64,000 nt of DNA from contig CM068771.1 of assembly GCA_035084275.1 (NCBI GenBank), forward strand, positions 3,038,001 to 3,102,000, written 5' to 3'. Shown one piece after another: positions 33,456 through 60,297 of this stretch (the stretch's first letter is position 1; every line of letters begins with the position of its first letter). The DNA is from Hydrolagus colliei (Eukaryota). The position numbers were made by a program, and so were the translations under genes. The notes below the pieces were generated by a model. It was not told the origin of the DNA and did not search any database. It saw only the letters and a program-made list of their open reading frames with translations.

Positions 33456-33548
33456 TTCTTCTATGTATGCGTGTCCGTGTCTTTGTGTGTGTGCGCAAAT
33501 GTGTGTATGTATGTTTCTGTGTTGACCAGTCAGAAATGACCAGCAAAT

Positions 33549-34453
33549 CTAAGTGGGGTTATGCGAATGGACCAGAGAGCGAGTGATGGGGTAAGTGAAG
33601 ATGGATATGAGCTGTTGCCTGAATTTGGTCTGGGTCACACCATAGATGAAGGTGTTGGAGCAGGAGCTCAGACGCTGCAGCATGTAACCCACCTGCTCAG
33701 CGATGGTGAATGGGCTGCTGTAGTCAGACTCTAGGTGCTTTGACTCTGTGACCATCGCAAACATGAATGTGACCGTGTAGGTGAGCCACAGCAACACAAA
33801 GCTGCCCGAAATAGTAAACAGCAGGATTATGGATTTCCGCCGACTCTCCATCTCCTCGTCCCTCCCCTTCGCAGCCCCCCGCAGACCCTGGCGTACCCTG
33901 CTGGCCACCAGCACATGCCTGATGGTCAGGGTGTTGAACAGGAGGATGAGGATGAATGGAAGCAGTGGGTTTACAATAACATCCAACCAGGCAAAAGTTC
34001 TCCAGGCAAGAGAGATGTAAACAATAGGTTTGATGGTGCAGTACCAGGGCTGTCCATCGATTACCAGCCGTGGTTCATAGATAAAATACAGGGGGATGTT
34101 CTCCAAGCACAAACCTGCACAGATTGTCCAGATCACCAGGCCCGCTGTCCTCTCAGTGCAGTACGTGGTTTTGAGGTTTGAGCAGCAGATGGCAATGAAA
34201 CGGTCGAAGGTGAAGGCCATGGTCAGCCATACAGAGGTTTCGGAGATAATATTGCAAATCGCTAGGTGCAGGCGGCAAACGGGTGTTTGGTGTATTGGTG
34301 AGTGTGGAAAGCAGAAGAAAAGTGTCATCAACAGGATCACATCAAAAATCATGACCAGCAGATCAGCAACAGCCATTGCGACCAGGTAGCGGGTGACACA
34401 TTTGGAGAGTCCACAGTTTCCCTGGGCCAGGACCACAATGGTCAGTGAGATCA
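33549..34453 (-). CDS. Orphan class A GPCR (GPR139/GPR142-like, chondrichthyan-type) GPCR1, exon 2
   Basis: Intact ORF with TM1 end to TM7; motifs GLSKCVTRYLVAMAVADLL, FTFDRFIAICC, NTFIY; TTTTCCTGCAG acceptor, phase 1. Confidence 0.92.
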
Positions 34454-37167
34454 CTGCAGGAAAAACACCATCATTTTATTTCATTTGAAGGAATTATTAC
34501 ATTGCGGAAATATGATCCAACATAAAGCCAGAATCCTACTGACTGCAAGGTAAACAGAAGCATGTGGAGTATGTCAGATTGCCCAACACTTTTCCATCTG
34601 GAAATCAAACCTACGTCTCTCCCTTATGAGGAGTGTGCACCAATCATTGAGCAACAAATAACCATTCAGATGAAAGCAGCAATAATAGTAATTCTTGCAT
34701 TTGTTGACAAACATGATACACATCATTGAGATGTCTCAAAGTGGTTCACGTTGTACACTGTAATGTAATTTGAATGCGCATTTTTTGTGTTGAAATATGT
34801 AGCCAGTGGTGCAGAGTAGTGTCCCACAAACATGCATGGAGTGAGTGACCAATTTTATTTTGGGGATTTGTTGGCCAGTACACCTGATGATACAGATCAT
34901 GACTTTAGTTTAATCTCTCATCTGAAGGACAGAACATCCAAAAATCTCCACCCTCACCAGCACTGCCTACATTGGAGTGACATCTCAGCCAATGTGATTC
35001 GAAGTCTTGATGTGGGCTTGGAACCACAACTCAATGAGAATTCCATCAGAAGATTTGGCTTCAGCAAAACAAGCAGCATACTGACATAGATTATTGATAG
35101 TTTAGTTTTTCAACACTAAATACTTTTTAAAATATCATTCTATATGTATCACATCCTCTCAGAAACATTAACGTTACAACTTTGCCCTTCGAAGCTGAGA
35201 AGTTGCATCTTGCCATATTGTGAAAAAATTGTTCTTCATCGAATGTCTTATTCCATGACGGCAAATGAAGCACATTCTACACTGTACAGTTAGAGATGTG
35301 TCTATTTTTATATAGATAACCTGTACAACCTTCAATAAATGAAGGAGATCCACTCACCCAATATTTGCTGTTAGCTTATCCTGCAAGCTTGCTCTCCTCC
35401 TCACCACACCTAGTACACTAACAATACTATCCTTATCAGCAAACTCCCTGTATGTTTCGAGGTGTACCTTGACATTACTAATGTGCACACATTCACATAA
35501 ACAGACTTCAGTTATACAGGCATATTGAAGCATTAATAACTCACACTCATACCTGTACCATGCCCCAGGATCAGAAAAGATAATTTGAGTTGAAATATCC
35601 AAAGTGGGTTTTAACCCGCACTCTTCTGATTGACAGGTGGCAGTATCTTAAAAACGCTGCTGCCAAGGATACACACCTCCCATTGATCCAGTCTCAGATC
35701 ATTCGATCTTGGGTTTTGAAGCCTCATGTTGGAAAACAGAGTTCCCAACAATCACCACCCATCCAATTATCTCTTCCATCTCTACTTTCAAACTTCATCT
35801 AGCACTGCAAAACCCAATTTTGACCCCTCCAACCTCACAAGTTATGGTCCCACATCTAACACGCACCCTTGGCATGTTGATGCTGTGCCCACAGCACAGA
35901 GACTGTGCTTCTGAAAGTCACAATCCATGTTCTATCTCTGTCATCAGTGTTCCCTCTGCCTCTCTAACCTTTGGACTCAGCTACCCCAAACAACAAATTC
36001 TACTATGTTATCAAATAGCTTAATGGTTGCAGCATTTGCCTCACAAGAGACGAGAGGACTTGAGTTTCATTCTAGAGAACTGTGTGATGTTATGAAATTC
36101 ACTTATTTCACACGATTCACTGTTTATCGAGCAGCAAGAAGGAATATGGTTGTTCGGCGATTGGTGGATCGCTTTTCTGGGGATAACTTTCCCTCAAAAC
36201 CTTGGGAAACTTTCCTTGCTTCACATCGCTGATAACTATTTCTCGTAACAAACAATAATAAATTGGCCATTTCAATCCATAGCTTTTTGTGTGGCACTGT
36301 TTTGCACAATTGGCTGTGCCTCTAAGTAAATTCATAATTCACAAGTCAATTCCATTTATAGTATGTGTTGTGAAGCACTTTGAGATGCCTAGAAGTTCTA
36401 TGTCAAAGGAAACATTATTAATAATAGTGTAATATAATTACTAGATAATAATACACTAATAATAACTATGAATTATAATTATAGTGCAATATATAATACA
36501 TAATTATTAATAATAGTGTTCAGTACATACATAAAATTATTTGGTCACACAATTCAGCATGGTTTGTTCTACACCGCTGTGCACATTTTGCTAGCACATT
36601 TGCCCCACCAAAATGCAGTAAATTCAGTTGAAAGTGTATTCTCTGAAGATAATGTATTCTCTCCTGTTTTGAGATGTCATGAAGGCACGATTACAGTACT
36701 ACCATCAACATAGGGACAAAGTTTTATCTTCCTCCAATGACTTCCTCCACTTTCGTGGGACTAAAAGCTCTGTCCTTCACCTCTGCCACATTGTTACCTT
36801 TTCACTGCACCTCAACCAAAATACAGTTTGGTTGTATGCCTTGAACATGTGATTGTCATCTCCCACCTCGATTACTCAAACAACCTTCTCACCGGTCTCC
36901 CCAGCTACACTATCCACAAAATCCAGTTAAACCTGACTACCACAACCCTACACCACTACACTGTATTCCGTTCCCCCACCACTGCAGTCCATGGCGGGCT
37001 CCAATGGCTCTCTATCACTCAAATGATAGAATTGACGATGCTCATTCTCTAACACTGGTGATCAGGCTGGTTGCTCTCCTCCAGTAATAAAGATATCACT
37101 GCCAGTTACATGGTCACAGCTGTGAGACCCATCTTTGCCCGAGTGTGAGTTATTTGGAATGGCTTAC

Positions 37168-37231
37168 CAGGAATACCAATGAATCCCAGCAGAGGATAGA
37201 ACACTTTTATTATTTCTATCAACCCCACCAT
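37168..37231 (-). CDS. GPCR1 exon 1 (MVGLIEIIKVFYPLLGFIGIP)
   Basis: 64 nt, G|GTAAGC donor, in phase with exon 2; supplies the first half of TM1; three homologous copies in the window. Confidence 0.85.
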
Positions 37232-38439
37232 TCTCAACCAGTGCTGGCTTCCTTCTGCTAAAGCTTAAAAACTACACCCCAACTACATCGCTCCAGAGCT
37301 TCCACTCCTTTTTGTAGCTGTGACTCAGGTCCGCTGGGATGTAGATTGCCAAAGCACGAAGTCACCTTCTCATCTGAAAACAACATCTAACAGCAGCTGC
37401 TTTCACGCCATTCCCCCACATAATGCCCTTATTTCCAAGAAAAAAAAGAACTACAAGAATAAACAAAGCAAGCGAGATACTGGGCTCCATCTTTGGATGT
37501 GTTGAATTCATGTACAGAGCAGATAGTCTCAAATTGCAGTTTGAGGTTTGTTCATTGAAGTACGGCATAGAGTTCTGATCAGGATCCAGATTGATTAATT
37601 AGAAATCAGTATCGAAAGGAATTATTAGCAGAAGGAGTGTTCCTGCTCCTCATCTCTCTCATTTGTACATGTTTGTGTGTACCTGTTGGCGACACAAATC
37701 AACTTCTTCTCTATCTGCAACTCGCAGTCCACTCATGTCTGGTCAGCTTGTTTTCCAGACATCAAGGCCTGGAGCAGCAGGAATTCCCAACAGCTGAATG
37801 TCGGCAAAATTAAAATTCCATCTTCTTTGTCTCTCAACAACATATTCTCTCCTGCAGGCAGAATAACAACTGCCAAATTACATTTGTATAACGCCTTTCA
37901 CATCAAGAGGAAATACAACAACAACCACAAGATTACACTTTCATAGCACTTTTCACATCAATAGAATGTCCTACGTTACTGAAATACCTAGGCACTCGGC
38001 TTCAGTGCTTCAGACCCAAACTGGGGTCAGGATCGGGGTGTGTTTAGGGAAGGAGGGAAAAGGTTGTTAAAGATTGTATGGTCACATAGGAGGTCCTTGA
38101 GGCGATACTTAAAGGACCCCAATGCCTGTAGAGCTCCTCTTGTTCAGTGATTAGAGCACTCGCCTTACAAACGTGAGACCAGGCAGATCAAGGCAAATCC
38201 TTGGGCCAGTTTCTTACTCCACATGTTTAATAATAATCCGTCCAAAAACAAAAATAATGATAAAAATTGGTCATTTCAATCCATCACTGATTGTGGGACT
38301 CTTCTGCGCAAACTTCGCTGCCATGTTTTGCCGACAATTAATCAATGAGTTCACTGTACATTATATTCTGTGAAGCACTTTGAGATGTTGATAAGATGTG
38401 AAAAGTTCTGTATCAAATGCAAGGATTATTATTATTATT

Positions 38440-41400
38440 ATTTTCAAAAACAATGTAATACTGACTACCTGCCCGGCTACTGGTCTCTCTCTGGCTTTCT
38501 CTCTGGCTCGCTCTCTGCCTCTCTCTGGCTCTGTCTTTGGCTCTCTCTGGCTCTCTCTTGCTCTCTCTCTGGCTCTCTCTCTGCCTCTCTCTGGCTCACT
38601 CCCGAGCGCCATTGTGCCCCCTTTCCACCCGTTGGCAAATGACACAATAGCGACCGTCGCCACGTTAAATGGAAATACGTTCCCAACGTATTAGCAACGT
38701 AATGACGAAACAACGTCAACCTATACTTTGTGACGCGCTTTGAGGCGTCTTAGAGGGCGCTACATCAAATGCAAGGATTAATATAGTTTATTATCATTAA
38801 AGGAATGAATGTTCCTGTGCGTTGTTTATTGTTCAAGAGCAAACGACTGGGGGTTGCCCCAGCGAGCTGTCTCGTAAATCAACCAATGTACCTTCTAACA
38901 AGTTAATAGATTCCTTACTCCCACAAGAATAGACTGAATAGGCCGACGTGAAAGGCGCTCTATAAATGTAATATGTTGTTATAGTGTTAGGATTTGCAGA
39001 GGTAGGGTGAAACAAGGCCACAGATGGTTTAATTCAATATAACCTTTGAATGTATCCTTTGGGTTAGGGTTAGGTCTAATGGTTGTCATACTCATTATGG
39101 GTAATAAAGCCTTGGTCAAGCCACATGACCCAGGGTCAAGTCGAGTCAGCAGATCTCAGCTGACCAGTTCAGCTCGATATCAGGAGAGCAGGATAACGAA
39201 CAGAGAGAAATAACCAAATAATAGAGAGAAATATATTCTGCATTGAAAGACTGAAATTGACAGATTTCTTATGGATACAGAGATTAAGAGATATGCGGAT
39301 AAGGCGGGGGCAGGTGTAGTTAGATTAGAAGATCAGCCATAATCTTATTGAATGGCGTGGCAGGCTCAATGGGCCGAATGGCCTACCCCTGCTCTTTATT
39401 CTTATGTAGAATAAATCTGGCTAAAATACAAAAGTAACAGGTTGAATTTGATGAGAAGTATCAGGCAACACAGACAAGGTTTAAAGACAGAATACAGATA
39501 ATGTAGGGTAAGTTTCTAGATGCGGAAAGGAGTAAGGAACAATTCTATCAACAGTTGCTACCAGGAAAAGAGGATATGATAGGTTATATGGATGCCCGTA
39601 TTGCAGAATTATGTAGTACAGTGAATCTCAACAGTGTGTGGTAACGATGGCTAAACAACAGGGGAGCGAGTTCGTTGCCAAAGCTCAGCAATATGAGGAA
39701 TTGGAAAACATGGCAGTCTTGCTAAAATACAAGCTGGAGGATGCACAGTCTGCACATAGAAATAGACATGAATAGAGAATTCCCATTTGGAGATCACAAA
39801 CAGTGCCAGAAAATAATAATAATGCTTGCATTCTATACAGCACTTTTCACATCTTATTGACGACTCCATGCACTTCACAGAATACACTGTGAAGTGAATT
39901 GACTGTATATAAGGCTGTGAGACCACTTGCCTTATAAGCGTGAGAATTGCTTTTGAATCCAGGCAGATCAGGGCAAAATCTAGGGCAAGTTTCCTACTCC
40001 ACACGCTTACAGTACATTCTGCGAAGTGCTTTGAGGCTTGCTGTTGGGTTGACGGACATGGAGCAGGCCATATGCTGTGGGAGCTGTGGGAGCGGACAGT
40101 TTGGCAAAGAGTTATGAATCATTCCAGGGGATGGAGAGGAAAGGGAGTTTGGAGATGGTGTGGTAGATGGAGAATAGGGATGGGTCCAAGGAAAGCTGTA
40201 TCAGAATGGTGAAGACAACTGTAGTTAAGTGGCTGGGAACAGCGCCAGTGGATAATGAGAGTTTGATGTCAATTGGGAGAGAAGCCAGGAGGTGGAGCTG
40301 GGAGGTGAGGAGGCAGTTGAGCAAGAGGTGGTGAGGCAGTTGACGGAGCAGTGAAAGGTTACATTTTGGTGAAAAGAGAGGTGAGAGAGGAAGGAAAGTT
40401 ACAAGCGATGAGACAGTAGTGGTGGACGGGGTAGAAGTCGCTTAACGGATACACTCGATTTGGGATTTGAGGATGTTCAGCAGCTCCTCACAAGTGGAAT
40501 TGGAGAAGAGGCATGGGAAGGTTGATGAAGGTGGCGATCCTTGGCCTCCAAGATTATCTTAGAGCAGATGAAAAATTTGGCAGAGGTTAGGCAGAGCAGC
40601 GGATCTTGGTGTGATGAAGCCAAATCTTCTGATGGACTCCTGATTTGGATGGGGGTTTGGCAGCTCACAGTTGAGAGATTAGAGAAGGCTGGGGTACCAA
40701 TGGGATTTATGGTATATGAAGTAGTTCATAGGTAAGCAGGGCCAGGCAGATAAGGTTGGAGGAGATAGTTGGTTTGGTCTATAAGGGCCAGATGGGCAGG
40801 ACTTCAGATGACTCCAGGGCAGTGGAATGAGGAAGAGAGATTTTCCAAACTAGAGATTCAAGCACACAGAATTTTTTGAAGGTGGCAGGATAGGTTGACA
40901 AAGCTGTACAAGAAACACATGGGATTCTTGGCTTTGCAAATATAGGGATAGCGTATAAAAGCATGGAGGTTATGTTGAATCTTTAGAAATCATTGGTTAG
41001 TCCTGAGCGGGAGTATAGTGTCCAATGCTATGGCTTGGAAAACCTGTTTCCTTTGGTGTGTTCGTTGATACCAGAGGACATAGTTTCTTCCTATTTACTT
41101 CATCAAACCCTGTGCGGGTGGGATACTTCAACTAAATTAGGCCTTAAATTTCTCTGATCTAAGGAAAACAATCCCAGACTCTCTTGTCTCTCCACACAAT
41201 CTAAATATCTTATCGCTAGATTCATTCAGGTGAATATACTTTTCGAACATCTTTCCTAAATTGGCAAAATAATCAGAAGACAGACGAGAAGAATTTGTTA
41301 AGCCCAGAGATTTGATATGATCTAATATTCACTGTCTGCAGTGTGCTGGAAGCAGATTGGATAGTAGCGACCAAAAGAAATAACATAATGACTTGAAAAT

Positions 41401-43354
41401 AAAATATATGCACGGCTATAGGAAAAGTTCTGGACTTCTTTCAAAGAGCAAGCATGTACATGATGGGCCAAATGTCTTTCTGTTGTACTGCAACATTCTA
41501 GAAAAGATACGAAACATGACTAAATCAGTTTTGAAGTCTCTTCTCCCAAATCAGGTTCCCAAAGCCGGCTATAATTGAAATTATCTTTCGACTTTTGTTC
41601 AGCTGGGACTATCACACCAGTCAAGGCTTTGGCTTTCAGAGTTCACTGGAGATAATTGGAACAAATAATCCTCTCATTATTGTCCCTTGCAGCCCTGAAA
41701 ATGAGCCAAGCTGGCTGTCCGGTCACCTGCATTGCCCAACAAGACTGAGGGACCCACTTGGCTCAGTACTGAAGGGATGTGATATTAAGGAGGTAGAGTA
41801 TTAATTGTTTATTTAATCCACACATAAATCAAAAACCTACATCAGTTCTCTTTCAAATATTAAAAATCTCATAGCATTGAATGTTGCTCTGTTTGATGTC
41901 TAGATGCTTCCTCTCGACATTGTCATCTGCAGACATGAGGTCAACATTCACATGTATGTGGATGATACCGTGCTGTGAATCCATGTCCGCTGATGTTCTT
42001 TCAGCTTCTTTGACAAAGTTTCTGCAGCTGAATGTCAGAAGCCATACTCCTTGGCTGCAGTCAATGTTTTCTTTCCTGTGGGTCTGAAAACCTCAACCTC
42101 CCTGGGCTCCCCCTCAGAATCACCAAACTCAGTTTCAAAGACCAGCTTTCCTTTCTACTCCACATGAATTCACTGAACAAGCCCACTCATTCCACCGACA
42201 TCGCATTGCCCACCTCCATGCCTGCCCCACACCCACAGCAGTCAAAACCCTCATCAATGCGTTTGTCACATTTCAGCTGAACTATTCACCTGCCCTCCTC
42301 GCTGGACTCCCCAGCTCCATCGTTTCTCACCTCGTACTGACTCGGTGTCTGACTGTCAAAAGCTACACGATGCTGCACTAGGTGAAAGAGATTCATAGAG
42401 ATTCATAGCATTTTAAGGCACAAAAGGAGGCCATTCGGCCCATCTGGTCTGTGCCGGCTCTTTGAAATGATCGATTCAATCCCACTGCCCTGCCCACTCC
42501 CCATAGCCTAATAGACCTGTTCTCCCTAAATAAATATCTAATTCCCTTTTAAAAGTTGTTATCGAATCAGCCTCCACCACCTTTTCAGGCAATGCATTCC
42601 AGATTCGAACAACTCGCTGAGTGAAAAAAATTCTCCTCAGCTCCCCTTTACTTCACCTTGAAACTATTTTAAATCTGTGACCACGAGTCACAGATTCGCC
42701 TACGAGTGGAAATAGTTTTTCTCTATTTGCCCCGTCGAAACCCCTCATGATCTTATAAACCTCTATTAGGTCTCCCCTCAATCTTCTCTGCTCCAGAGAG
42801 AATAACCCTAGCCTATCTAGCTTCTCCTCATAGCTGAAGTCCCTCAATCCTGGCACCATCCTAGTAAATCTTCTTTGTACCCTTTCCAATGTCTTCACAT
42901 CCTTTCTGTAGTGTGGTGACCAGAATTGAACACAGTATTCCAGCTGAGGCCTCACCAAAGTTTTATAGAGGTTAGTCAGCACTTCCTAACTTTTGTACTC
43001 TATACCCCTATTTATAAAGCCTAGTATTCCATATGCCTTCTTAACAGCCTTGTCTACCTGTCCTGCCACCTTCAACGAGTCACTAACACAAAACTCCAGG
43101 TCTCTCTGTTCTTTCACACCGTTTAAAATTGTACTATCTAGCCTATATTGCCTCCCTTCATTTCTTATCCCAAAATGCATCACCTCACACTTCTCTGCAT
43201 TAGACTTCATCTGCCATGTGAAACTGCATGAATGCATATTTTGTTGTTGCTGTTGGTTTGTCAGTATGTTTTGAGAACTTAGCATCTGTATTCCTTGGCT
43301 GCAATAAACACCTTCTCCCCTTATGCACTGACCGACTCAAACTATGCAGAGTAA
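38440..43354. other. Segmental duplication block B
   Basis: Mosaic of 23535-24350, 24700-24735 and 28638-32189, plus a private CR1 insertion. Confidence 0.88.
42388..43222 (-). mobile_element. Young CR1 3' segment private to block B
   Basis: About 95% similar by eye to 32620-33450; absent at the homologous site in block A (32050-32065). Confidence 0.92.
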
Positions 43355-43638
43355 ATATTAATCTTTCTTTGTCACAGTTCCCACCCAAAGAATGTTCGCT
43401 TTAGTTTACAGGAATGAATGAATTAGTATTTCTGCTGACTGTGAACAGTCTGTCTCTCCAGGTCTTGTCAATGAAATATACTGGTTGGTCTATTGCCAGC
43501 TGTGCATCGACTAACATGGAGTCCACAACAAATGATGGAATCAATTTAACTAGTCCACTGTAAGGCAAAATAAAGAATAAGCCAGTGCAGATCACATTCC
43601 CAGGGAAATGTATGATTGTATCTGTGTCTTTTCTGCAG

Positions 43639-44543
43639 CGATCTCTTTGACCATTGTGGTCCTGGCCCAGGGAATGGGTGGACTCTCCAAATGTGTAACT
43701 CGATACCTTGTAGCTATGGCTGTTGCTGATCTGCTGGTCGTAGTTTTCGATGTGATCCTGTACGAGACACTTAATATTCACAGTCCTTATTCACCCATAC
43801 ATCAGACAGCCATTTGCCGTCCACATCTGACACTTTGCTTCATTGTTATTGATAGTTCTGTCTGGCTGACCATGGCCTTCACCTTTGACCGTTTCATTGC
43901 CATCTGCTGTCAAAGGCTCAAAACCCAATACTGCACTGAGAGGACAGCGGGCATGGTCATCTGGACAATCTGTGCAGGTTTGTGCTTGGAGAACATCCCC
44001 CTGTATTTCATCTACAAACCACGGCTGGTAGTCAATGGGCAGCCATGGTACTGTTCTGTTAAACCTATTATTTACACCTCTCCTGCCTGGAGAGTATTTG
44101 CCTGGTTGGAAATTTTTGCAAATCCACTGCTTCCCTTCATCCTCATCCTCCTCTTCAACACCTTGACCATCAGGCATGTGCTGGTGGCCAGCAGGGTACG
44201 CCAAGGTCTGCGGGGAGCTGCAAAAGGGAGGGACGAGGAGATGGAGAGTCGGCAGAAATCCATAATCCTGCTGTTTACCATCTCGGGCAGCTTTGTGTTG
44301 CTGTGGCTCACCTACATGGTCACCTACATCTTTGCGAGGGTAACGGAAGCCAAGCACATGCAGTCTGACTACAGCAGCCCGTTCACCAACGCTGAGCTGG
44401 TGGGTTACATGCTGCAGCGTCTGAGCTCCTGCTCCAACACCTTCATCTATGGTGTGACCCAGACCAAATTCAGGCAACAACTCATATCCATCATCACTTA
44501 CCCCATCACTCGCTTATTTGTCCACTCGTATAACACAACTTAG
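43639..44543 (+). CDS. Orphan GPCR2 exon 2; ORF intact but no exon 1 upstream on this strand
   Basis: Same family motifs; TTTTCTGCAG acceptor, phase 1; an in-frame ATG at 43608 reads through the acceptor. Confidence 0.85.
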
Positions 44544-46519
44544 CTTCTGCCTGGTCAACACAGACACTCACACTCATACTCAGACACACACACACAAAGA
44601 CACATGCACACATACACAGACACACAGACACATATATATATATGAAATCTTGTGGAATCGTTCTGTATTCAAGAATTCTCTTCAATCTGTGTTTGGAATT
44701 CCAATTGTGAAAAACAGCTTTATGTCTCCTATGTAGTTGATTGTAATTGTTTTCTTGATATTCTGTTACCTCTGCCTGACTTTATTGAATTCCTCTTACC
44801 TGTATGTAATTAGTTTGAATTATGTGGGAAAAAATTACCTATGAAAAGGACAGATCTCCAAGAAGTTATACAGAAAGTTCTCAAAATATACTGACAAACC
44901 AATAGCAACTAAAAAAATTCATGTGTTGTCGTTCACCGAGTGTAGCATTGTGTAGTTTTTGACAGACGACATTGTGTCCTGCTAAAAAGTGACAAATGCG
45001 TCCATGAGTGTTTTGACTGCTGTGGGTGTGAGATAGGCTTGGAGGTGGGCAATGTGGTGGATGTGGGAAAGCGTGTTCCTGTTCAGGGAATAGATGTCAA
45101 TTGGAAAGGAAAGCTGGTCATTGTAACGGATGCCTAAATTGAGTTTGGTGATTCTCAGGGTGAACCCAGAGAGATTGAGATTTTCAGACCCACAGGAGAA
45201 AAAACACTGAGCGGAGCCAAGGAGTATGGCTTCCATTCTGCCGACATTGAGCTACTGAAAATTTGTCAAAGAAGCTGAAAGAACATCAGCGTACATGGAT
45301 TCACATGTGAATGTTAACCTGATGTCTGCAGATGACACTGTCGAGAGGAAGCATCTAGACATTAAACAGAGCAACATTCAATGCTATGAGCTTTTCAATA
45401 GTTGAAAGAGAACTGATTTTCAATTGATGTGTGGATTAAATAAATATATAATACTCTACCTCCTTGATATCACTGCATCTTGGCCCATCTTGTATATGCT
45501 TGTTCTTTCAATGAAGTCTAGAACTTGTCCTACAGCCCTGCACATTTTTTGTTTTCAAGTCATTAAGTTATTCCTTTCAGTAGCTACTGTCCAATCTGCT
45601 TCCACCACACTTCCAGGGAGTGAGTATCTGATCATAACTAAACACTGGGCAAGAAACAATCCACTTGCCTCCCCTCTGGTTATTTTGCCAATTTAGGAAT
45701 TATGTCAGCACCTTGGAAAGGATGCTAAGAATATTAACCTGAATCATTCTAGGGATCAGGGATTTAAATTGTGCGGAGAGGCTAGATGGGCTGGGATTCT
45801 TTCTCTTAGATCAGTGAAAATTTATTCGAAGTGTTCACAATCCTTGATGGGTTTTCATAAAGTAAACAGGGAGAAACTGTATCCTCTGGTTGTAGACCAT
45901 CACGTCGGAGAAACAGCCTTTCCAAGCCACAGAAGTGGACACAGTACTCCCGCTTTGGACTAACCAGTGGTATGTAAAGATTCAACATAACCTCCATGCT
46001 TTTATACACCATCCCAATATTTACAAAGCCAAGAAGCTCATGTGCTTTTTTCACAGCTTTGTCAAATTATCCAAAGATGTTTAAAAATGTATGCGTGCAT
46101 GAATCCCTGGGTCTCTCTGCTTGGAAAAATAATTCTCCCTTGCCCATTCCACTGTCCTGGAGTCAACTGAAGACCTGCCTGCCTGGCTCTGATAGACCAA
46201 TCTATTATCTCTTCCAACCTTGCCTGACATCCCTAACCTACAAACTGCCTCATTCACCATAAATCCCACTGGTACCCCAGCCTTCTCTGATCCCTCAAGG
46301 CAGAAGAGTGAACTGCCAAACGCCCCTGAAGCAAATCCAAATCAGGAGTCCTTTGGATGATTTGGCTTTATCACACTAAGATCTACTGCTCCGCCTACCT
46401 TCTGCTAAATATTTCTTCTATTCCAGGATAATCTTGGAGGCCAAGAATAACACCAGGCTCCACTTTGCCACCACTAAACACCACATTCATCAACCTGCCC
46501 ATGACCAAACATACGTATA

Positions 46520-47260
46520 TTAGATATTATACGTAAATTTTAAGCAAGCATTTGACAAAGTGCCACATAAAAGGATATTGCAGAAGGTTAAGGCCCATGG
46601 ATTTAATGGGAGCATATTATAATGCATTGAAGAGTGGCTAATGGGTAGAAAACAGAGAGTAGGGGTAAATGGGTCATTCTCAAATTGGCAGGATGTGACA
46701 AAACGATCAGTGCTTCGGCCTCAAATATTTTCAATTTTCATCAATGATCTAGACAAAGACATTGAATGTAGCATGTCTAAATTCGCAATTGACACCAAAC
46801 TGGGTGGGAGAGTAAGCTCTAAGGATGATGCAAAAAGATAGCAATGGGATATAGAAAGGCTAGCGAGTGGGCAAGGTAGTAAACCGTGGTAAACCGAGGT
46901 AGTAAAAATAGAAAAACAGATGATTTTGTAGAAGAGAAGAGGTTAGATAATGTCAGTGTTCAGAGGGATTTGGTGTCCTTGTACACCAGTCGCAAAAAGT
47001 TAGTTTGCCAGAACAGCAAACAACTAAGAAGACAAACATCATGTTAGCGTTCATTGCAAATGTTTAGAGTACAAGAGTAGGGAAGTCTTGCTGCAACTGT
47101 CTAGGTCCTTAATGAGACAAGACCTAGAATGTTGTGTGCAGTTTTGGTCTCCTTATTTAAAAAAAGGACAGACTTGCCTTCGAGCTGCTTCAGCGTAGAT
47201 TCACTGGGTTATTTCATGGGTTGAGGGGACGGACTAACCTACAAGATTGAATAAACTAGG
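46520..47260 (+). mobile_element. Old CR1 RT fragment
   Basis: FDKVPHKR...QRVGVNGSFSNWQDVT...FINDLDKDIECSMSKFA remnant with stops and frameshifts. Confidence 0.8.
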
Positions 47261-48019
47261 GCTGTAGTCGCTTATGTTGATGCTCCGCCCACAGCAGAAA
47301 CGTGTTTCTCAAAGTCACAATCTATGTTCTGTCTGTGTTAGCAGTGTTCCTTCTACCTCTCTATCCTTTGGAATTATCTGCACAACACAACAAATTCTAC
47401 CATGTTATCAAATAGCTTAATGGTAGGAGCATTTGCCTCACAATGGAGAGGATTTGTGATTCATTCTAGACCAGTGTGTGATGTTATGAAATTCCCTTAC
47501 TTCACAAGATTCTCTGTTTACCGAGCATCAAGTAGGAATACTGTTGTTCAGCGATTGGTGGATCGCTTTTCTGGGGATAGCTTTCTCTCAACACCTTGCC
47601 ACTAATTCAATTCACAATTCATTAGTCAATTAGTCAACACCTCTCCTTAGCTCCTTCAAGTCTCACCAGAAGACCTTCCTCTTCAAGTCCCATTGTAACC
47701 CCAAATCTCCACCGTTCCCTCCTCCTTTACATCCCCAACCCCAGCTTGGATCTGAAATAACGTCTGCCAGTACCTGGGACATTCTCCTGACGTGAAAGTT
47801 GCTATATAAGCATAATTGTGATGTCATTGCTGTTTATAGTATTTTTGTTCTGTATGTTCTGTTACTTTTCTCTGTATTTATTGAATTCTTCTATCCTGTA
47901 AGTAAATTGTGTGGATTATGTGCAAAATACTGATTTATATAACAGTGTATGAATAACTCTAGAGACTCCATGCTTTCAGTTATACACAAAGAGTATGAGT
48001 GAATGGATTTTTTCTGCAA

Positions 48020-50760
48020 AGTTTGAGTATAACAGCAACAAAATTATACCTGTATTGGGCCTTTCACATCAGGAGGACATCTCAAGGCACTGGGCAGTCA
48101 CTGTGTCAGACCCAGCTGGGGATGGTGGGGGTGGTGAAGGGAAGTGGGGATTAAGGAGTTGCCGATGGGACCATCGATGGGGAGAGTCTTGAGGCAAGTC
48201 TTGAAGGATGCCAGGGATGGGGCGAGATGGAGGTACTGCAGGATGTACTTCCAGAGGTAGGAGGCAGAGTGGCTAAAGGCTCTCCCACCAATGGTGGGGC
48301 AGATGGGTGGGGGGATGTGGTGCAGGCCAGAGCCAGGGCAGGTTGGTAAGGGGTTAGAAGGTCACGGATGCAGGAGTGCGGGGGCGAGGCTGTGGAGGGA
48401 TTTATATATGAGGACCAGGATCTTGAATTGGATCCTTTGGATGATGGGGAATCAAAGGAGTCAGGCGTGGATGCTGGTGATAGGTTCACGGAGTTTCAAA
48501 AGCAGAGCATTTGCATAGTCAAGCTGGGATGTAATGAAGGCATGAATGAGTAGGTCAGAGTAGAAGGGGAGAAAATCTTCATGACAACCAAGGAGTACAG
48601 CTTCCAATGTCTCATAACAAGCTGACTGATCAACCACAATGGCAACAAAAAACTTGGATTCAGATAGCGTCATTCACATTGGTTAGCGTCCTGTAATGTT
48701 TGACAGTTAGACTCCAAGTGGAGTCCTGTAGCCCAGTGATTAGAGCACTTGCCTTACAAGTGAGAGATGTGGGGGTCAACCCCTGGAAGGGCAAATCGTT
48801 GGACAAGTTTCCTGCCCAAGGAAATAATAAATTGATAATTTGAATCCATGACTATTGATGGGACACCGCTGTGTGAAATTTCGCTGTTGCATTTCACTGA
48901 TGTATGTACAGTCAATTCACTTTACAGTATATTCTGTAAAGAGTTTTGAGATGTCTATAAGATGTGAAAAGCACTATATTGAGTGCAAACATGATTATTA
49001 TTATTATTAAGTCAGTGGAAGTGGAGTATTGATGGAGCTGTGGAGCCCAGCAAGAAGGTCATGTGAATTGTCCAACTGAGAAGTGACAAATGCGACGATG
49101 AGGGTTTTGACTGCTTTGGGTGTGAAGTATGTTTGGACGTGGGCAATGTGATGGATACCAAAGGGAATGGTCCTGTTCGGGGAATGGATCTAATCCAAAA
49201 CTGTTGACAATATTGGCGCAGATTCAGTGATTCTGAGGTTGAGTCCATTGAGGTAGAGTAGTTCCACAGGAAATAAGCCAACGAGTATGGCTTCTGTTTT
49301 GCCAACATTCAGCTGCAGGATGTTTGTCAAACAAGCTGACTGGAGATTAGAGAGTGGGAGTCACAGCAGGCTGTCGTCCACAAACATGTGGAAGTTATTA
49401 ATGTCTATTCCTGTAGCTCGGTGGTTAGAGGCACTAGCCTTACAAATGTGAGACCTGTGTTTCGAATCCAGGCATGGTGAAACACTGGGCAAGTTTCCTT
49501 ACTCTAAGTGACCAGATTTGAACACAGTACTCTCATTGAGGCCTAACCAAATTTTTATAGAGGTTAGTCTTAACATTTTGACTTTTGTACTCTATGCCCC
49601 TATTTATAAAGTCTAGTATCCCACATGCTTTTTTTTTAACAGCCTTGTCTACCTTTCCTGCAACCTTCAAAGATTCACTCACACAAACCCCGAGGTTTCT
49701 CTGTTGCTTCACACCCCTTAAAATTGTACCAACTAGGCTATATTGCCTCCCAAAATGCATCATCTCACATTTCTTTACATTAAATTTCATCTGCCATGTG
49801 TCTACCCATTTTACCATTCTGTCTATATCTTCTGGCAGATGGCTACTATCCTCCTCACAATTTACTATTGTTCCTAACTTTGTGTCATCTGCAAACTTGG
49901 AAATGGTATTCCCTATTCCCAAGTCCAAATACAAGGATGATTATTATTATTATCCTCATATCGGCAGATGATGTCACCGAGTGGAAGAATGTACATATTA
50001 AAAGCAAGGCCGAAGATGGAGCCTTGTAGTACCCCACAAATTACTAGGTGGGTGCTGGTGGAAAAACTATTTGCTGAGATGTATTGTTGAGTAGGAGTCA
50101 AGTGAAGTCCCACTAAGGTGGATGAGGGAGGAGAGACACTAGAAGAGGATGTAATAATAATGGTAATCCTCACATTTGATATAATGCTTTCCATGTCTTC
50201 TGGACAACTCAAAGTTTCATAGAATATATTGTAAAGTGAATTGACTTTACTTATTTTAAAAAGGCAAAATACTGCGTTTGTTGGAAATCTGAAAGAAAAA
50301 CAGAAGTCACTGGGAAAACTCAGCAAGTCAGGCAGTGTCTATGGAGAAGAAAAAGCGAGTCAGTATTTTGGGTCCTTGACCCTTCATCAGAAATTTATTT
50401 TTTTAGTTATTATGTGTGGGTAAAACACGGCAGTCAACTGTCCACATCAGCTTCCCCACAAACAGTCGTGCATTGAAGTGACCAATTTCTTGATTATTTT
50501 TCAAAGGATATTATTAGGTGTGTGTAGTAAGGCAACTTGCCTAAGGTTTCACCATGTGAACACAGGTCACACAGTTGTAAGGCTCTAAGCTGCACATCTC
50601 AGTCATCAACTGTGTGAAACTCAGTGGAGGTCACCAGGAGAATGAGGTGGTAGATTGAGCCCTGATCACAGACGACGGTGCAGAGTAAAAACCAGACATG
50701 AGTAGTTCAAGTAGGGAGTAGAGGAAGAAGTGTGAGCAAAATTGAAATGACAACATTCCA
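48020..50760 (-). mobile_element. Old L2 element fragmented by SINEs and by a CR1 fragment (about 49500-49935)
   Basis: Minus-strand remnants GVLQGSIFG..YILPLGDII, QLNVGKTEAIL and HAFITSQLDYANALL lie in the expected order. Confidence 0.65.
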
Positions 50761-50797
50761 AAACGTTCGCCAGGAAGACCACCACACATAGCATATT

Positions 50798-52228
50798 GAA
50801 AGAATGGTTGCCTCCCAGCTCCGCTCTTTCCTTTCAACTCACTCACTCCTTGAACCCCTCCAATCAGGTTTCCACCCAATTCACAGCACAGAAACTGCCC
50901 TGGTTAAGGTTACAAATGACATCCTAACAGCCTGTGACCAGGGTTCCCTCTGCCTCATCGTCCTCCTTGACCTGTCTGCTGCGATCGACACAGTCGATCA
51001 CACCATCCTCCTCCAACGTTTTTCATCCCACCTCTACCTTCAAGGCACAGTCCTTGACTGGTTCCATTCCTACCTGACCCACCGTTTACACTTTGTTTCT
51101 TCCAACGGTTTTTCCTCAAACCCCCGCAAAGTTTCTTACGGCGTCCCTCAGGGCTCTGTCCTAGGCCCCCTCCTTTTCACCCTTTACACGCTCCCTCTGG
51201 GCGATGTCATCCACAAACATGGGGTAGATTTCCACATGTATGCGGACGACACACAGCTGTACCTTTCTGCCTCATCCTTTAACCCCCAGAGCATCGATGT
51301 TCTGACAGCATGTCTGTCCGACATAGAGTCCTGGACGAGGGACAGCTTCCTGCAATTGAACGTGAGTAAGACCGAGGCCCTCCTGATCAGCTCAAGCCAG
51401 TGCCTCCGCACATCGGGCGCTGCCAGACTCAACATCCAAGGCTGCACTCTCCACCTCACAAAGCCAATCAGGAACCTCGGCATCATGTTCGATCAAAAAC
51501 TCTCCTTCCTCCCCCACATCCATGCCTTGACAGCTTATTTCCACCTGCACAACATTGCCAGGCTCCGCAACTATCTTACCCCCTGCGCTGCCGAAACACT
51601 TGTGCACACATACATCACCTCGAGGCTGGACTATGGAAACTCTCTCCTCGTCGGCCTCCCCAGTTCCTCCATTCACAGGCTGCAGATCATCCAAAACTCT
51701 GCAGCCCGTGTACTATCCCGCACCTGCCTCCGCAACCACATAACTCCCACCCTCGCCCATCTCCATTGGCTCCCCATTCTCCAGAGGATCAAATCCAAGA
51801 TCCTCGTCCTCACCTTCAAGGCCTTACAAGGCCTTGCCCTGCCCTATTTAACCGATCTAGTTTCCCCCTACAAGCCCACCCCGACCCTCCGTTCAACAGT
51901 ACTTGGCCTGCTCCAAGCCCTCCACCCAAACAGCCCCACCATCGGAGGCCGGGCCTTCAGTTTCTCCGCTCCCAACCTATCGAATACCATCGCCCAATCC
52001 CTCCATCTCGTTTCTTCCCTTTCATCTTTCAAGGCCAGTTTGAAGACTTTCCTCATTGACCGTGCCTTTTGTTCCACTCCGAACTTTGTGACCTCCCTTT
52101 CTTGTTTCACCCCTTCCCAAACACTCCCCTCCCAGCTCGGGTCACACGCCTCCTGTGCAGCGCCTTGGGACGTCCTCCCGACGTGAAAGGCGCTCTATAA
52201 ATGTAATTTGTTGTTGTTGTTATTATTA
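50798..52228 (+). mobile_element. 5'-truncated young L2 LINE with an open 460-codon RT frame
   Basis: QSGF...STETAL.KV.NDI, GVPQGSVLGPLLF, MYADDTQLY, TSRLDYGNSLL; ends in the L2 tail with (TTG)n. Confidence 0.95.
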
Positions 52229-53689
52229 CAGATGTTGTTAGATTATCAAGAGGTGAAACAGTACGTAACTAGATTTTTGAATTCATGTGTTTTTAAAATA
52301 AATATGCAATACTCTACCTCCCTGATATTGCAGCCCTTCAGCAATGAGTCAAGTGAGTCTACAGCTCTGTTGGACAATGCAGTTGACAGAACAGCCAGTC
52401 TGGCTCATTTCCAGGACTACAAAACACATTCAGGTGAGGAACTTGTACCTCCAATTTGCTCCAGTATACGTTGGAAGCAAAATATTTGACCGGCAGGAAA
52501 TTTCCAGCTGGATAACGTTCAAACATTACCAGGCAGTAGAGCTACATTCATATGTGTAACATTCAGTCTAGTTTGGGCAACTTAAAGCATGGCAATGGGC
52601 ATGAGATTTCAATGTGATGCATCTGATTAATATTAAGTTGCCTAATGAAACAAGAATGCAAGAAACATCCCCACTTGAGCTCAAATATAAATTTTGGATA
52701 AATTCCCATGGCTTACAGTTTCATAGCAGAAATTTCATGACTTGGTTGAAAGTCTTGTGGAAGTCTGTAAATCCCACTTAGTTAGGTTTCCCATTCGTTA
52801 CAAAATGAAATCCTTGTTTCCTCGTGGCCTGCAGAAGAAAATACATTCATGGGAGACAAAGAATATGGCTATCATTTTGCCTACATTCAGCTGCAGGAAA
52901 TTTTTACTCCTACGGGCCTTGATGTCTGGACAACAAGCTGACCAGACACCAGATCCCATGTGGCAGAGTTGAAGTACAGAGTTTCTGGAAGTAAAATGAA
53001 ATAATAATGTCACTTCAATCCATGGTTGTCTGGGGAACACTGCTGTGCACAATCAGCTGCCATAGTCATGCACAAAATACATGGTCAATTGCAGTAATAT
53101 TCTATGAAGTGATTTTAGGCATCTCAACGATGTGATAAGATGCTACAACAAAGGCAAGATTGATAATTAGAATTATTGTATTGGTCAAATTTAGGACCAC
53201 ACTATGTCATTACCCTGACATGGAATCTGGGACTGCAAAGGTGACCAGGAAGGAGGTGGAAGCTGAGATATTATGACATGTTTCAGAAACAACTTGATCA
53301 TGAGAAAGGCGAGAGAGAGAGCATTTGGATTCTGGAAGCACAAGGATCTGATTCAAACATGAAAGTATAAAAGAAAATTCACATTCCCTCTGAGGAAAGT
53401 GAGTCTGTGATCTTTCAGGCATTTGTCTCTTGGGAAAATTATCAGGGGCTTAGGAATATCCAAACCTAAAGGGTTCCACACATATTGATCACTAACACAA
53501 AGCAGTTCATTTCTATCTAGAGTGGGGTGCATACTCTCTTCCTTGAAACATTCGATTGCGTACCCATTTCTCTGCAGAGTATGATACACATTTTACCATG
53601 AGACAATGTTTAGGGATCCAATAATTTGAATTGGGTTGAGGTGGGGTGGAGTATGATAATTCCTGGAAAAAAACTGGTTGATATTGATA

Positions 53690-53903
53690 TTTCTCTGTCA
53701 CAGTTCCCACACAAATAGAATCGGCTTTAGTTTACAGGAATGAATGACTTAGTAGCTCTATGGACAATGAACAGTTTAGTCAATGAGATATACTGGTTGG
53801 TCTGTTGCCAGCTATGGATTGACTAACTTGGAGTCCACCACATCAGACAGCCATTTGTCGTCTGCACCTGACACTTTGCTTCGTTGTTATTGATAGTTCT
53901 GTC
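53690..53903 (+). pseudogene. GPCR2-type relic: intron end fused to a 63-nt TM3 fragment
   Basis: 53690-53840 matches 43355-43520; 53841-53903 (HQTAICRLHLTLCFVVIDSSV) matches 43800-43862. Confidence 0.8.
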
Positions 53904-54107
53904 AGTTTGAAAAACAACGCATTTTGTGGGGAATGGCGTGAAAGCAGCTGCCTCTACATGTTGTTTTCATGTGAGAAGGTGACTTCCTCCTTCTGCAATC
54001 TACGTCCCAGCGGACCTGAATCACAGCTACAAAAAGGAGTAGACGCAACGATGTAGTTGGGATGTAGATTTCAACCTTCAGCAGAAGGAAGCCAGCACTG
54101 CTTGAGA

Positions 54108-54171
54108 ATGGTGTGGTTGATAGAAATAGCAAAGGTGTTCTATCCTGTGCTGGGATTCATTGGTATTCCTG
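54108..54171 (+). CDS. GPCR3 exon 1 (MVWLIEIAKVFYPVLGFIGIP)
   Basis: 64 nt, G|GTAAGC donor, in phase with exon 2. Confidence 0.85.
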
Positions 54172-56542
54172 GTAAGCCATTCCAAATAACTCACACTCGG
54201 GCAAAGCTGGTTCTCACAGCTGTGACCGTGTACCTGGCAGTGATATATTTTTTACTGGTGGAGAGGAACCAGCCTGACAGAAGTTTTAGTCACACTAAAT
54301 TGCCTGAAATTAACTTACTGCATTTTTGTGGGGCAAATACAATAGTTCACGATAGTGTAACACAAACAGTCCTCAGTTTTGTGACCAAGTAATTTAATGG
54401 CTATTATTATTAATAATAATGTATTATTAAATATTTCCCTGTTATTTTTATTATTCATAATGGTTATTATTAATGTATTATTATATAATAATTATACTAT
54501 GTTATTATTAATAATGCTTGCTTTTGACATAGAAATACTAGGCATCTCAATGTCTTTCACAAAATATACCATAAAGTGAATTGACTTATGAATCATGAAT
54601 ACAATTATGGACATAGCACAGCAGCCAATTGTGCAAAACAGTGCCTCACAAAAAGTTGCAGATTGAACTGACCAATTTATTATTGTTTGCTACGAGGGAT
54701 CATTATCAGACAAGTGAAGCAAGGAAACTTCCCCAAGGTTTTGAGGGCAAGTTATCCACAGAAAAGCAATTTCCGAACAACCGTATTCCTACTTGCTGCT
54801 TGATAAACAGAGAATCGTGTGAAATTAGGAAATTTCATAACATCACACGCTGCTCAGGAATGAACCATAAATCCTCTCCATTGTGAGGCAAATGCTCCAA
54901 CCATTAAGCTACTTGATAACATGGTAGAATTTGTTGTTTGGGGCAGATAAGTCCAAAGGATAGAGAGGCAGAAGGAACACTGCTGACAGAGAGAGAACAT
55001 AGTTTGTGACATTGAGAAGCAGTGTCTGTGCTGTCGGCAGAGCATCAACGTGCCTGGGGTGTGGGTTAAAAATGGGAACATAACTTATGAGGTTGTAGGG
55101 GTCGAAATTGGGTTTTGAAGTGTTGGATGGAGTTTGAAGTTAGAGATGGAATAGATCATGGGATGGGTGATATTTGTTGGGAAACCTGTGTTCTAACAAG
55201 AGGCTTGAAAACCCAAGACCTAATGATCTCAGAGTGGATCAATGGGAGGTGTGTATCCTTGATAGCAGCATTTTTAGATGGAGTTGTCTATTTGGCTCAA
55301 AGATACTGCTACCTGTCAATCAGAAGAGTGTGGATTCACTTTGGATATTTCAACTCAAATTATCTTTTCTGATGCTGGGAGTTGGTGCAGATATGAGTGT
55401 GAGTTATTAATGCTTCAATATGACTGTATCACTGAAGTCTGTTGATCTGATTGTGTGCACAGTAATAATGTCAAAGATATTATTGGTAGTGTACTAGGTT
55501 TGTTGAGGAGGAGAGCAAAGTTGCAGGATGAGCTGACAGGAAATATTAGGTGAGTGGAGCTCCTTCATTTATGAATGGTTTTAGAGTATATCTATATAAA
55601 AATAATCATATTTCAAACTGTACAGTGTAGAATGTGTTGCATTTGCCATCAAAGTATAAGACATCAAATGAAGAACAATATTTTCAGAATGTGGCAAGAT
55701 GCAACTTCTCAGATTCGAAGGGCAAATTTGTAACATTAATGTTTCCGAGAGGATGTGATACATATCAATTTTTTTATTTTTTTTAAGTGTTTAGTGTTGA
55801 AAAACTAAAGTATAAATAATCTATGTCAGGATGCTGCTCTGGTAACAGTTTGACTCTGAGTCAGAAGGTTGTGGTTCCAAACCCACATCAAGACTTCGAA
55901 TCACATTGTCTGAGATGCAACTCCAAAGTAGGCAGTGGCGGTGGAAATTGTTGGACATTGAGTCATTCAGATGAGGGATTATACTAATGTCACGATCTGT
56001 ATCATAAGGTACAGTGCACCTAATAGCAGGATCTGCTATTGTGAAGCGCTCTGAGACGCCATGCGGCGTGGAGGGAGCTATATAAATTGAATTTGTTGTT
56101 GTTTTTGTTTACTGGCAAAGAAATCCTCCAAATAAAATTGATCACTCACTCCATGACTGCTTGTGGGACACTACCCTGAACCGTTGACTATCACATTTCA
56201 CCACCAAAATGCGCATATAAATTACATTACAGTATACCACGTGAACCAATTTGAGACATCTCAATGATGTAAACAGATGACGCAACAAAAGCAAGAATTA
56301 TTATTATTACTGGTTTCATGTAAACGGTTACATGGATTCCTGTTGCTCAATGGTTCATGCACACTCCTCACAACTGAGAGACATGAGTCGATTTCCAGCA
56401 AGAAAAATATTGGGAAGCTTACTTACTCCATATGCCTCTGTTTACCTAGCAGTCAGCAGGATTCTGGTTGTTTGGCTGGACCATGTTTCCAGAATGTAAT
56501 AATTCCTTCAAATGAAATAAAATGATGGTGTTTTTCCTGCAG

Positions 56543-57447
56543 TAATCTCACTGACCATTGTGGTCCTGGCCCAGGGAAAGTGTGGACTCTCCAAATGTGT
56601 CACCCGCTACCTGGTCGCAATGGCTGTTGCTGATCTGCTGGTCATGATTTTTGATGTGATCCTGTTGATGACACTTTTCTTCTGCTTTCCACACTCACCA
56701 ATACACCAAACACCCGTGTGCCGCCTGCACCTAGCAATTCGCTTTATTATCACTGAATCCTCTGTCTGGCTGACCATGGCCTTCACCTTCGACCGTTTCA
56801 TTGCCATCTGCTGCTCAAACCTCAAAACCACATACTGCACTGAGAGGACAGCGGGCCTGGTGATCTGGACAATCTGTGCAGGTTTGTGCTTGGAGAACAT
56901 CCCCCTGTATTTTATCTATGAACCACGGCTGGTAATCGATGGACAGCCCTGGTACTGCACCCACAAACCTATCGTTTACATCTCTCTTGCCTGGAGAACT
57001 TTTGCCTGGTTGGATGTTATTGTAAACCCACTGCTTCCCTTTATCCTCATCCTCCTGTTCAACACACTGACCATCAGGCATGTGCTGGTGGCCAGCAGGG
57101 TACGCCAGGGTCTGCGGGGGGCTGCGAAGGGGAGGGACGAGGAGATGGAGAGTCGGCGGAAATCCATAATCCTGCTGTTTACTATTTCGGGCAGCTTTGT
57201 GTTGCTGTGGCTCACCTACACGGTCACATTCATGTTTGCGATGGTCACAGAGTCAAAGTACCTAGAGTCTGACTACAGCAGCCCGTTCACCATCGCTGAG
57301 CATGTGGGTTACATGCTGCAGCGTCTGAGCTCCTGCTCCAACACCTTCATCTATGGTGTGACCCAGACCAAATTCAGGCAACAGCTCATATCCATCTTCA
57401 CTTACCCCATCACTCGCTTACTGGTCCATTCGCATAACCCCACTTAG
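56543..57447 (+). CDS. Orphan GPCR3 exon 2
   Basis: Intact ORF; 23 nucleotide differences from GPCR1 exon 2 by manual count. Confidence 0.92.
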
Positions 57448-60233: not shown

Positions 60234-60297
60234 CAGGAATACCAATGAATCCCAGCAGAGGATAGAACACCTTTGTTACTTCTATCAACCCCACCAT
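60234..60297 (-). CDS. Orphaned GPCR exon 1 (MVGLIEVTKVFYPLLGFIGIP), probably the displaced first exon of GPCR2
   Basis: Intact ATG, frame and G|GTAAGC donor; its intron runs to 57804 and ends at GPCR3's 3' UTR with no exon 2. Confidence 0.75.

Follow-up and report, generated by a model that had tools for sequence, protein, structure and literature searches.

We analyzed a stretch of 64,000 nucleotides (nt) from the genome of Hydrolagus colliei (assembly GCA_035084275.1, contig CM068771.1, positions 3,038,001 to 3,102,000 of the forward strand; hereafter "the window", in which position 1 is the first letter) that holds three units of a tandem array of a two-exon orphan class A G-protein-coupled receptor (GPCR) gene. 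We call these genes G1, G2, and G3. The second exons of G1 and G3 are nearly identical, and as the alignments read, this near-identity is the outcome of recent copying of about 4.9 kb, by non-allelic gene conversion or unequal exchange, and not of a simple gene duplication. The best explanation for the locus, and one that we regard as probable, is patchy recent copying combined with uneven constraint in a tandem array of orphan receptors. The G1 and G3 units are mosaic in structure, constraint along their coding sequence is uneven, and the ligand pocket is hypervariable across the whole family to which they belong.

A young tract and a probably older island in G1 and G3

The window contains three class A GPCR exon-2 reading frames, all of them uninterrupted: G1 at 33549-34454 on the minus strand, G2 at 43608-44543 on the plus strand, and G3 at 56560-57447 on the plus strand. 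All three were taken from the list of open reading frames (ORFs) and match the Pfam domain 7tm_1 (E 4e-20 to 7e-19; 68.8-72.8 bits, with a gathering cut-off of 30.5). Aligning the G1 and G3 units, we found that their identity jumps at G3 positions 56492/56493, ~50 nt upstream of the exon-2 acceptor. Upstream of this step the two introns differ at 88 of 386 columns, or about once every 4-5 nt, versus 27 of 1042 columns in the tract downstream (Fisher P 5e-31). Over the intron and exon-1 region as a whole, the two units differ by 10-14% substitutions and by many indels; in the intron, substitutions amount to 12-14%, and identity with indels counted is ~82%.

Downstream of the step, the similarity extends well past the coding sequence. 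The 273 nt of 3' flank that follow the stop codon are 95.6% identical between G1 and G3, a 135-nt spacer is 98% identical, and a 3.4-kb non-coding block, here called X in the G1 unit (28638-32053) and X' in its counterpart (38975-42386), shows 2.8% substitutions. The young tract, made up of exon 2 and its 3' flank, thus measures ~4.9 kb and is ~3% diverged. Its G3 side occupies 56493-57801 on the plus strand and takes in exon 2 with the final 50 nt of intron before it and the 3' flank after it. The G1 side runs on the minus strand from 28638 to 34503 and comprises X, the spacer (32055-32190), the 3' flank (32191-32463), and exon 2, along with an inserted repeat of about 1 kb (32620-33448); the sequence that pairs with G1's X and spacer lies on the plus strand at 38975-43354, as X' and a second spacer copy (43220-43354). 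The sharp step in identity, together with non-coding DNA that is just as alike as the exon, indicates that the G1 and G3 units are chimeric, each with an older 5' part and a young 3' part of ~4.9 kb. These are the marks of segmental copying: a sharp identity step that spans non-coding DNA, and synonymous divergence that is uneven along the exon.

Exon 2 shows 22 differences between G1 and G3 over 888 aligned nt. A first-pass annotation of this DNA had counted nine residue differences, four of them in transmembrane helix 3 (TM3), and our alignment bears this out. The TM3 differences (G1/G3) are C/R at 3.32, N/F at 3.33, S/T at 3.36, and T/S at 3.38; the remaining five are N/K in intracellular loop 1 (ICL1), I/H two residues after the cysteine of extracellular loop 2 (ECL2 C+2), H/Y in ECL3, Q/H at the top of TM7 (position 7.36), and S/L in the tail, so that the changes previously noted in ECL2, ECL3, and TM7 are all present. 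Our numbering, anchored at C3.25, the DRF motif, P5.50, W6.48, and N7.49, is consistent with a HMMER alignment to NTSR1, and the earlier numbering from C3.25 and R3.50 is correct and fits this alignment too. The states reported for G2 (C at 3.32, F at 3.33, I at 3.36, and D at 3.37) are likewise as claimed, as is the near-invariance of TM5-ICL3-TM6: from N5.46 to Y6.51 the three proteins are identical except for R/Q at 6.31. The statement that the G1/G3 differences lie mainly at pocket residues stands with a qualification: canonical pocket positions account for only four or five of the nine (3.32, 3.33, 3.36, ECL2 C+2, and marginally 7.36), and 3.38 is not one of them. The described cluster of eight TM3 substitutions is real and non-random (P 9e-5, permutation within the tract), although it spans 31 nt (G3 56736-56766) and not 33.

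This cluster is the core of what we term the TM3 island, at 56718-56766 on the plus strand in G3 and 34230-34278 in G1, which holds nine of the 22 exon-2 nucleotide differences. Across the island's codons 58-74, synonymous divergence (dS) is 0.37, versus 0.033 in the rest of exon 2, and is about as high as between G1/G3 and G2 (0.33-0.35); the ratio of nonsynonymous to synonymous divergence (omega) in the island is 0.40. Its 17 codons carry four synonymous-type changes where 0.36 would be expected (P 5e-4). Since selection at the protein level does not bring synonymous changes together, this clustering points to DNA that is older than the surrounding tract or foreign to it. Import from a G2-type copy was ruled out by four island states (A3.30, I3.31, the second base of codon 3.36, and E3.37) that are derived and common to G1 and G3 in comparison with G2 and a Callorhinchus paralogue; these shared derived states mark the island as old G1/G3 sequence. 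We also searched the window for a donor of the G1 patch and found no further copy within nine mismatches; N3.33 is carried by only four of the 115 shark proteins and by no other holocephalan.

The patchiness is not confined to the receptor gene. Non-coding block X, otherwise 97% identical to X', contains a cluster of seven substitutions in 31 nt (about 31703-31733, aligned to ~42040; P 0.01, permutation) and six adjacent double substitutions where 2.75 would be expected. A comparable cluster in non-coding DNA indicates that patchiness belongs to this duplicate pair in general and not to the pocket in particular. Most simply read, conversion or repair ran along a discontinuous tract and left old sequence standing in a few places, of which the island is one. 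By this mechanism, exon 2 and its 3' flank would have been copied recently between the G1 and G3 units, with one boundary of the copying ~50 nt before the exon-2 acceptor, and the copying would have skipped an island of 31-49 nt at the top of TM3 that retains the earlier divergence of G1 from G3 and accounts for four of the nine amino-acid differences. Since then, purifying selection would have acted on both genes, most strongly on the cytoplasmic face, and outward pocket sites (the top of TM3, ECL2 past its cysteine, ECL3, and the top of TM7) may have been free or favoured to change.

A separate fragment of TM3 lies elsewhere in the window. At 53840-53903 on the plus strand, ~205 nt upstream of G3 exon 1, we identified a 64-nt relic of a G2-type TM3 segment (exon-2 nt 159-222, from the end of ECL1 to position 3.40), which is 92% identical to G2 and is flanked on both sides by sequence unrelated to the gene. 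The relic sits at the point where the three regions upstream of exon 1 cease to be homologous, and its 3' end (exon-2 nt 222) coincides with the end of the G1/G3 island. We considered 53829-54014 as a decayed exon 2 and ruled this out, as only the 64 nt align and the flanks are unrelated.

Constraint and selection in exon 2

Between G1 and G3, omega over exon 2 is 0.34, significantly below 1 (P 0.008-0.02), which shows that both genes stayed under constraint. The strength of this constraint varies along the protein. In codons 181-210, which encode the end of TM5, ICL3, and the start of TM6, the ratio of nonsynonymous to synonymous differences per site (pN/pS) is ~0.06 with synonymous differences still present, indicating genuine constraint on the cytoplasmic coupling face. 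In the block from TM2 to ECL1, omega reaches 0.5-1.0. Synonymous differences per synonymous site (pS) between G2 and G1/G3 vary between 0.03 and 0.54 from one part of the exon to another, suggesting that G2 too took part in mosaic exchange at an earlier time.

The first-pass annotation had interpreted the G1/G3 differences as diversifying selection on a ligand pocket. This explanation holds that a simple recent duplication was followed by positive diversifying selection on orthosteric-pocket residues, which we consider unlikely. We defined 49 hypervariable sites (entropy of at least 2 bits) from 115 shark homologues only, and found that five of the nine G1/G3 differences fall on them (P 0.007). 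At these sites the pair shows seven nonsynonymous changes and one synonymous change (7N:1S; omega 2.25), versus ~4.5N:9.5S elsewhere (omega 0.15), a significant contrast (Fisher P 0.02-0.03) that also fits uneven constraint. The same positions differ repeatedly in independent close pairs of shark homologues, as described below, and three of the amino-acid differences each require two adjacent nucleotide changes. Apart from the states common to both genes, the island changes fall mostly on the G1 lineage. They include the replacement of F by N at 3.33, one of the two-base changes. These observations would fit selection on pocket residues.

Against selection, the 7N:1S count does not exceed the neutral expectation significantly (P 0.39), and the TM3 island alone accounts for three of the seven nonsynonymous changes. 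Synonymous changes cluster in that same island, whose omega is well below 1, and non-coding X shows both a similar cluster and a similar excess of adjacent double substitutions. In comparisons of G2 with G1 or G3, omega at hypervariable sites (0.26-0.29) is not above that elsewhere (0.31-0.32), and in older pairs it is 0.26-0.63. Neither pairwise omega nor the counts at hypervariable sites demonstrate positive selection for G1, G2, or G3. Taken together, the recent copying of ~4.9 kb, the dS of 0.37 in the island, the non-coding cluster, and a 7N:1S count not significantly beyond neutrality make diversifying selection the less likely account of the G1/G3 differences, and we favour patchy copying with uneven constraint.

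Pocket variability and receptor identity in cartilaginous fish

In a protein search, we obtained 1970 matches at E <= 1e-3. The 120 best of these all come from cartilaginous fish, chiefly from two shark species, and many belong to a single species; clustering at 50% identity gives 105 clusters with E <= 1e-30. The closest database relatives of G1, G2, and G3 are Callorhinchus proteins (72-80% identity), followed by shark and ray proteins (about 50-56%), and NCBI names the shark and Callorhinchus homologues "probable GPR139". In a phylogenetic tree with GPR139-like genes of bony vertebrates as the outgroup, the three proteins form one clade (support 94/86) that is sister to five Callorhinchus proteins, and the bony-vertebrate genes fall outside. 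The search counts and the three units in the window describe a large, lineage-specific tandem expansion. The skate loci that we examined have only one or two genes each. A literature search found nothing on an expansion of GPR139-type genes in sharks, other elasmobranchs, or cartilaginous fish at large, which is not proof of novelty.

We assigned pocket positions by generic class A numbering and from a mutagenesis study of GPR139 (PMC5430874). Among the 115 shark homologues, the most variable positions are 2.61, 2.64, 2.65, 3.28, 3.29, 3.32, 3.33, and 3.36 in TM2 and TM3; 5.43, 6.51, 6.54, 6.58, 6.59, 7.35, 7.39, 7.42, and 7.43 in TM5 to TM7; and, in the loops, ECL2 C-1, C+1, and C+2 and ECL3. 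Hypervariable sites make up 19 of the 38 canonical pocket positions in a standard class A list, versus five of 154 other TM positions (P 1e-11), and the helices average 1.34 bits of entropy in their outer halves versus 0.58 in their inner ones. When 13 independent close shark pairs (86-95% identity) are compared, 38 differences fall in the top of TM3 versus 15.9 expected (P 2e-6), and 3.29, ECL2 C+2, and 3.32 are the most frequent sites of difference. The G1/G3 pattern is thus an extreme case of a trend that recurs in the family. Variability on the pocket side goes together with conservation of the intracellular face, and the family as a whole resembles a repertoire whose ligand binding is diversifying while its signalling face stays conserved. 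To that extent the proposal of a diversifying repertoire with common G-protein coupling is supported at the level of the family, by the hypervariable pocket and the pN/pS of ~0.06 in ICL3; the G1/G3 pair, which had been offered as evidence of the selection behind it, does not serve as such.

Structure modelling, put forward as a check in the first-pass annotation, gave a confident class A receptor fold. Our AlphaFold 2 model of G3 covers exon 2 only, that is TM2-TM7 and the end of TM1 without exon 1, and for this part the predicted fold is confident (predicted local distance difference test score 86.9, predicted template modelling score 0.83), with a beta-hairpin in ECL2. The top fold matches in the PDB are all class A receptors, with TM-scores of about 0.7, and the best of them are peptide receptors: the ghrelin receptor, GPR15, SSTR2, NTSR1, and the orexin and galanin receptors. 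C3.25 and the ECL2 cysteine are invariant, and of the microswitches, D2.50, DRF, W6.48, N7.49, and Y7.53 are retained; the whole family lacks P6.50 and P7.50. N1.50 is replaced by isoleucine in every holocephalan member that we saw, including G1, G2, G3 (56545-56547, the first exon-2 residue), and the Callorhinchus homologues, whereas 111 of the 112 shark sequences with a residue at this position have N. Position 4.50 shows the reverse, with W in holocephalans and A in most sharks. We infer that the proteins would act as GPCRs with varied ligand specificity and a common coupling interface.

In humans, GPR139 and GPR142 are orphan receptors that respond to aromatic amino acids and peptides, and GPR139 is a single conserved gene. 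The H. colliei proteins resemble GPR139 in their class A fold, in having N and not Y at 5.58, in lacking a proline at 7.50 (NTFIY here, NFFLY in GPR139), in the motif S3.39 / W3.41 / T3.43, and, in G2 and G3, in F3.33. The rare states at 5.58 and 7.50 and the TM3 pattern S-x-W-x-T make a distant kinship with the GPR139 group plausible. In contrast to GPR139, the cartilaginous-fish family is multi-copy, as its hold on the best 120 protein matches shows, and the sequence match is remote: among solved structures found by a PDB sequence search, NTSR1 (E 2.4e-10) ranks ahead of the GPR139 chain (E 2.6e-7). Mutagenesis and modelling of GPR139 identified the pocket residues F109 (3x33), H187 (5x43), W241 (6x48), N271 (7x38), and R244 (6x51), and mutation of F3.33 abolishes its activation (PMC5430874). 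W6.48 is kept in all three H. colliei proteins and F3.33 in G2 and G3 only; the other three positions hold V/I (5.43), Y (6.51), and G (7.38). That G1 replaces the very residue whose mutation inactivates GPR139 supports a ligand-facing role for position 3.33. With H5.43, R6.51, and N7.38 all replaced, and with GPR139 a remote match that NTSR1 outscores, the earlier suggestion of amino-acid ligands by analogy with GPR139/GPR142 is weak. Outside cartilaginous fish, the nearest relatives are GPR139-like genes of coelacanth, salamander, bichir, and teleosts (29-36% identity over the full length), which, unlike the present family, form small clusters of one to five sequences in our search and not tandem expansions; they are possibly the "GPR210A/B" groups of PMC6504862.

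Two other receptor systems invite comparison. With the odorant receptors (ORs) and TAARs, the family shares a large lineage-specific tandem expansion with pseudogene relics, pocket-facing hypervariability in the outer TM halves and ECL2, and a conserved intracellular face. It differs from them in having no sequence membership in either group, two coding exons, and structural neighbours that are peptide receptors with an ECL2 hairpin, and it is absent from the six chemoreceptor families surveyed in PMC10869828. The window's near-identical tandem paralogues, with differences concentrated at specificity residues, are also reminiscent of the primate L/M opsins. In those genes, gene conversion homogenises all but the function-determining sites, and selection that keeps the tuning sites apart is documented. 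Here, by contrast, the island could have escaped homogenisation by chance, as non-coding DNA has a similar island. A more ambitious reading would make the family an undescribed chemosensory-type repertoire that adds to the very small OR set of sharks and chimaeras, its pocket diversified by exchange of TM3-top cassettes among paralogues and pseudogene relics, with selection keeping converted and unconverted cassettes apart; we hold this to be improbable as a whole.

Near-neutral drift at weakly constrained extracellular positions, in genes of little or no function whose pocket pattern is simply missing constraint, would account for the omega of 0.5-1.0 in TM2-ECL1, the holocephalan loss of N1.50, and a G2 gene with no exon 1 on its strand and a relic fragment nearby, but is very improbable given three intact ORFs, an overall omega of 0.3 falling to ~0.06 in ICL3, the exon 1 and consensus splice sites retained by G1 and G3, and TM positions that vary far less where they face lipid, which are usually tolerant, than where they face the pocket, a difference that argues against plain relaxation of constraint.

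Several points weigh against patchy copying with uneven constraint, the reading we prefer. The bias of island changes toward the G1 lineage fits a G1-specific burst equally well, and the island could have arisen in place after copying, by clustered mutation or by selection. Loss of N1.50 in holocephalans is unusual for a working class A receptor, and the family test depends on a generic class A list of pocket positions, drawn up before testing.

Array layout and implications

Both exons are present in G1 and G3. G1 exon 2, from the end of TM1 to the stop codon, lies at 33549-34453 on the minus strand behind a phase-1 acceptor (cag/TG ATC), and its exon 1 at 37168-37231 on the same strand (MVGLIEIIKVFYPLLGFIGIP); G3 has exon 1 at 54108-54171 (MVWLIEIAKVFYPVLGFIGIP) and exon 2 at 56543-57447, both on the plus strand. 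G2 exon 2, at 43639-44543 on the plus strand, has an intact ORF and no same-strand exon 1 upstream in the assembly, and a third exon 1 without a partner is found at 60234-60297 on the minus strand (MVGLIEVTKVFYPLLGFIGIP). At all three places exon 1 consists of 21 codons plus one base and ends at a GTAAG donor, and each exon 2 begins in phase 1 at the consensus acceptor ttttcctgcag, so that in G1 and G3 exon 1 is intact and the splice sites match consensus. The predicted spliced proteins have ~322 residues, the usual length among shark homologues. We considered a single Logan contig as a transcript and ruled it out, as its 5' end reads as the end of the intron and marks it as unspliced genomic DNA.

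The order of the units appears to have been disturbed. In the G1 unit, the 135-nt spacer (32055-32190; 98% identical to 43220-43354) joins directly to the reverse complement of 57801-57529, and elsewhere the spacer and X' adjoin the 3' flank of G3 only after segment 43355-57801 is flipped. In this assembly the segment is therefore inverted relative to the ancestral unit order, which may reflect either a real inversion or an assembly misorientation. Its inversion would explain both the lack of a same-strand exon 1 for G2 and the orphan exon 1 at 60.3 kb, which is probably G2's own.

The window also contains repeats and further copies of array sequence. A repeat of ~830 nt has two main copies, 95% identical, at 32620-33448 and 42389-43220, and others at 7485-7931 and 2210-2766. 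The first main copy sits just past the G1 stop codon, and the second, which points the other way in absolute terms, lies upstream of G2 between X' and the spacer; a mobile element probably inserted at the two sites independently. Between G2 and G3, a 460-residue ORF at 50804-52186 on the plus strand contains a reverse-transcriptase domain (Pfam RVT_1, E 5e-25) and probably belongs to an element of the long interspersed nuclear element type. Sequence like X and the intron recurs close to the end of the window, at 61501-63244 and 63310-63893, which suggests a fourth array unit past 64 kb. In Callorhinchus, a homologue within the interval 3187487-3208413 of MU249860.1 lies ~7 kb from a TRIM-type RING/PRY-SPRY gene.

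Patchy DNA copying can mislead tests of selection, and the clustering of differences between G1 and G3 is largely its footprint. The case warns against reading clustered residue differences between near-identical paralogues as selection. At the same time, G1 and G3 amount to a natural swap experiment: nine residues differ, four or five of them in the pocket, and given a ligand, a few mutants could map specificity. More broadly, our sequence comparisons suggest that cartilaginous fish have a very large family of orphan receptors, hypervariable in the pocket and conserved on the coupling face. Cartilaginous fish have few odorant receptors, and if these genes are expressed in sensory tissue, they would change the picture of chemoreception in this group.

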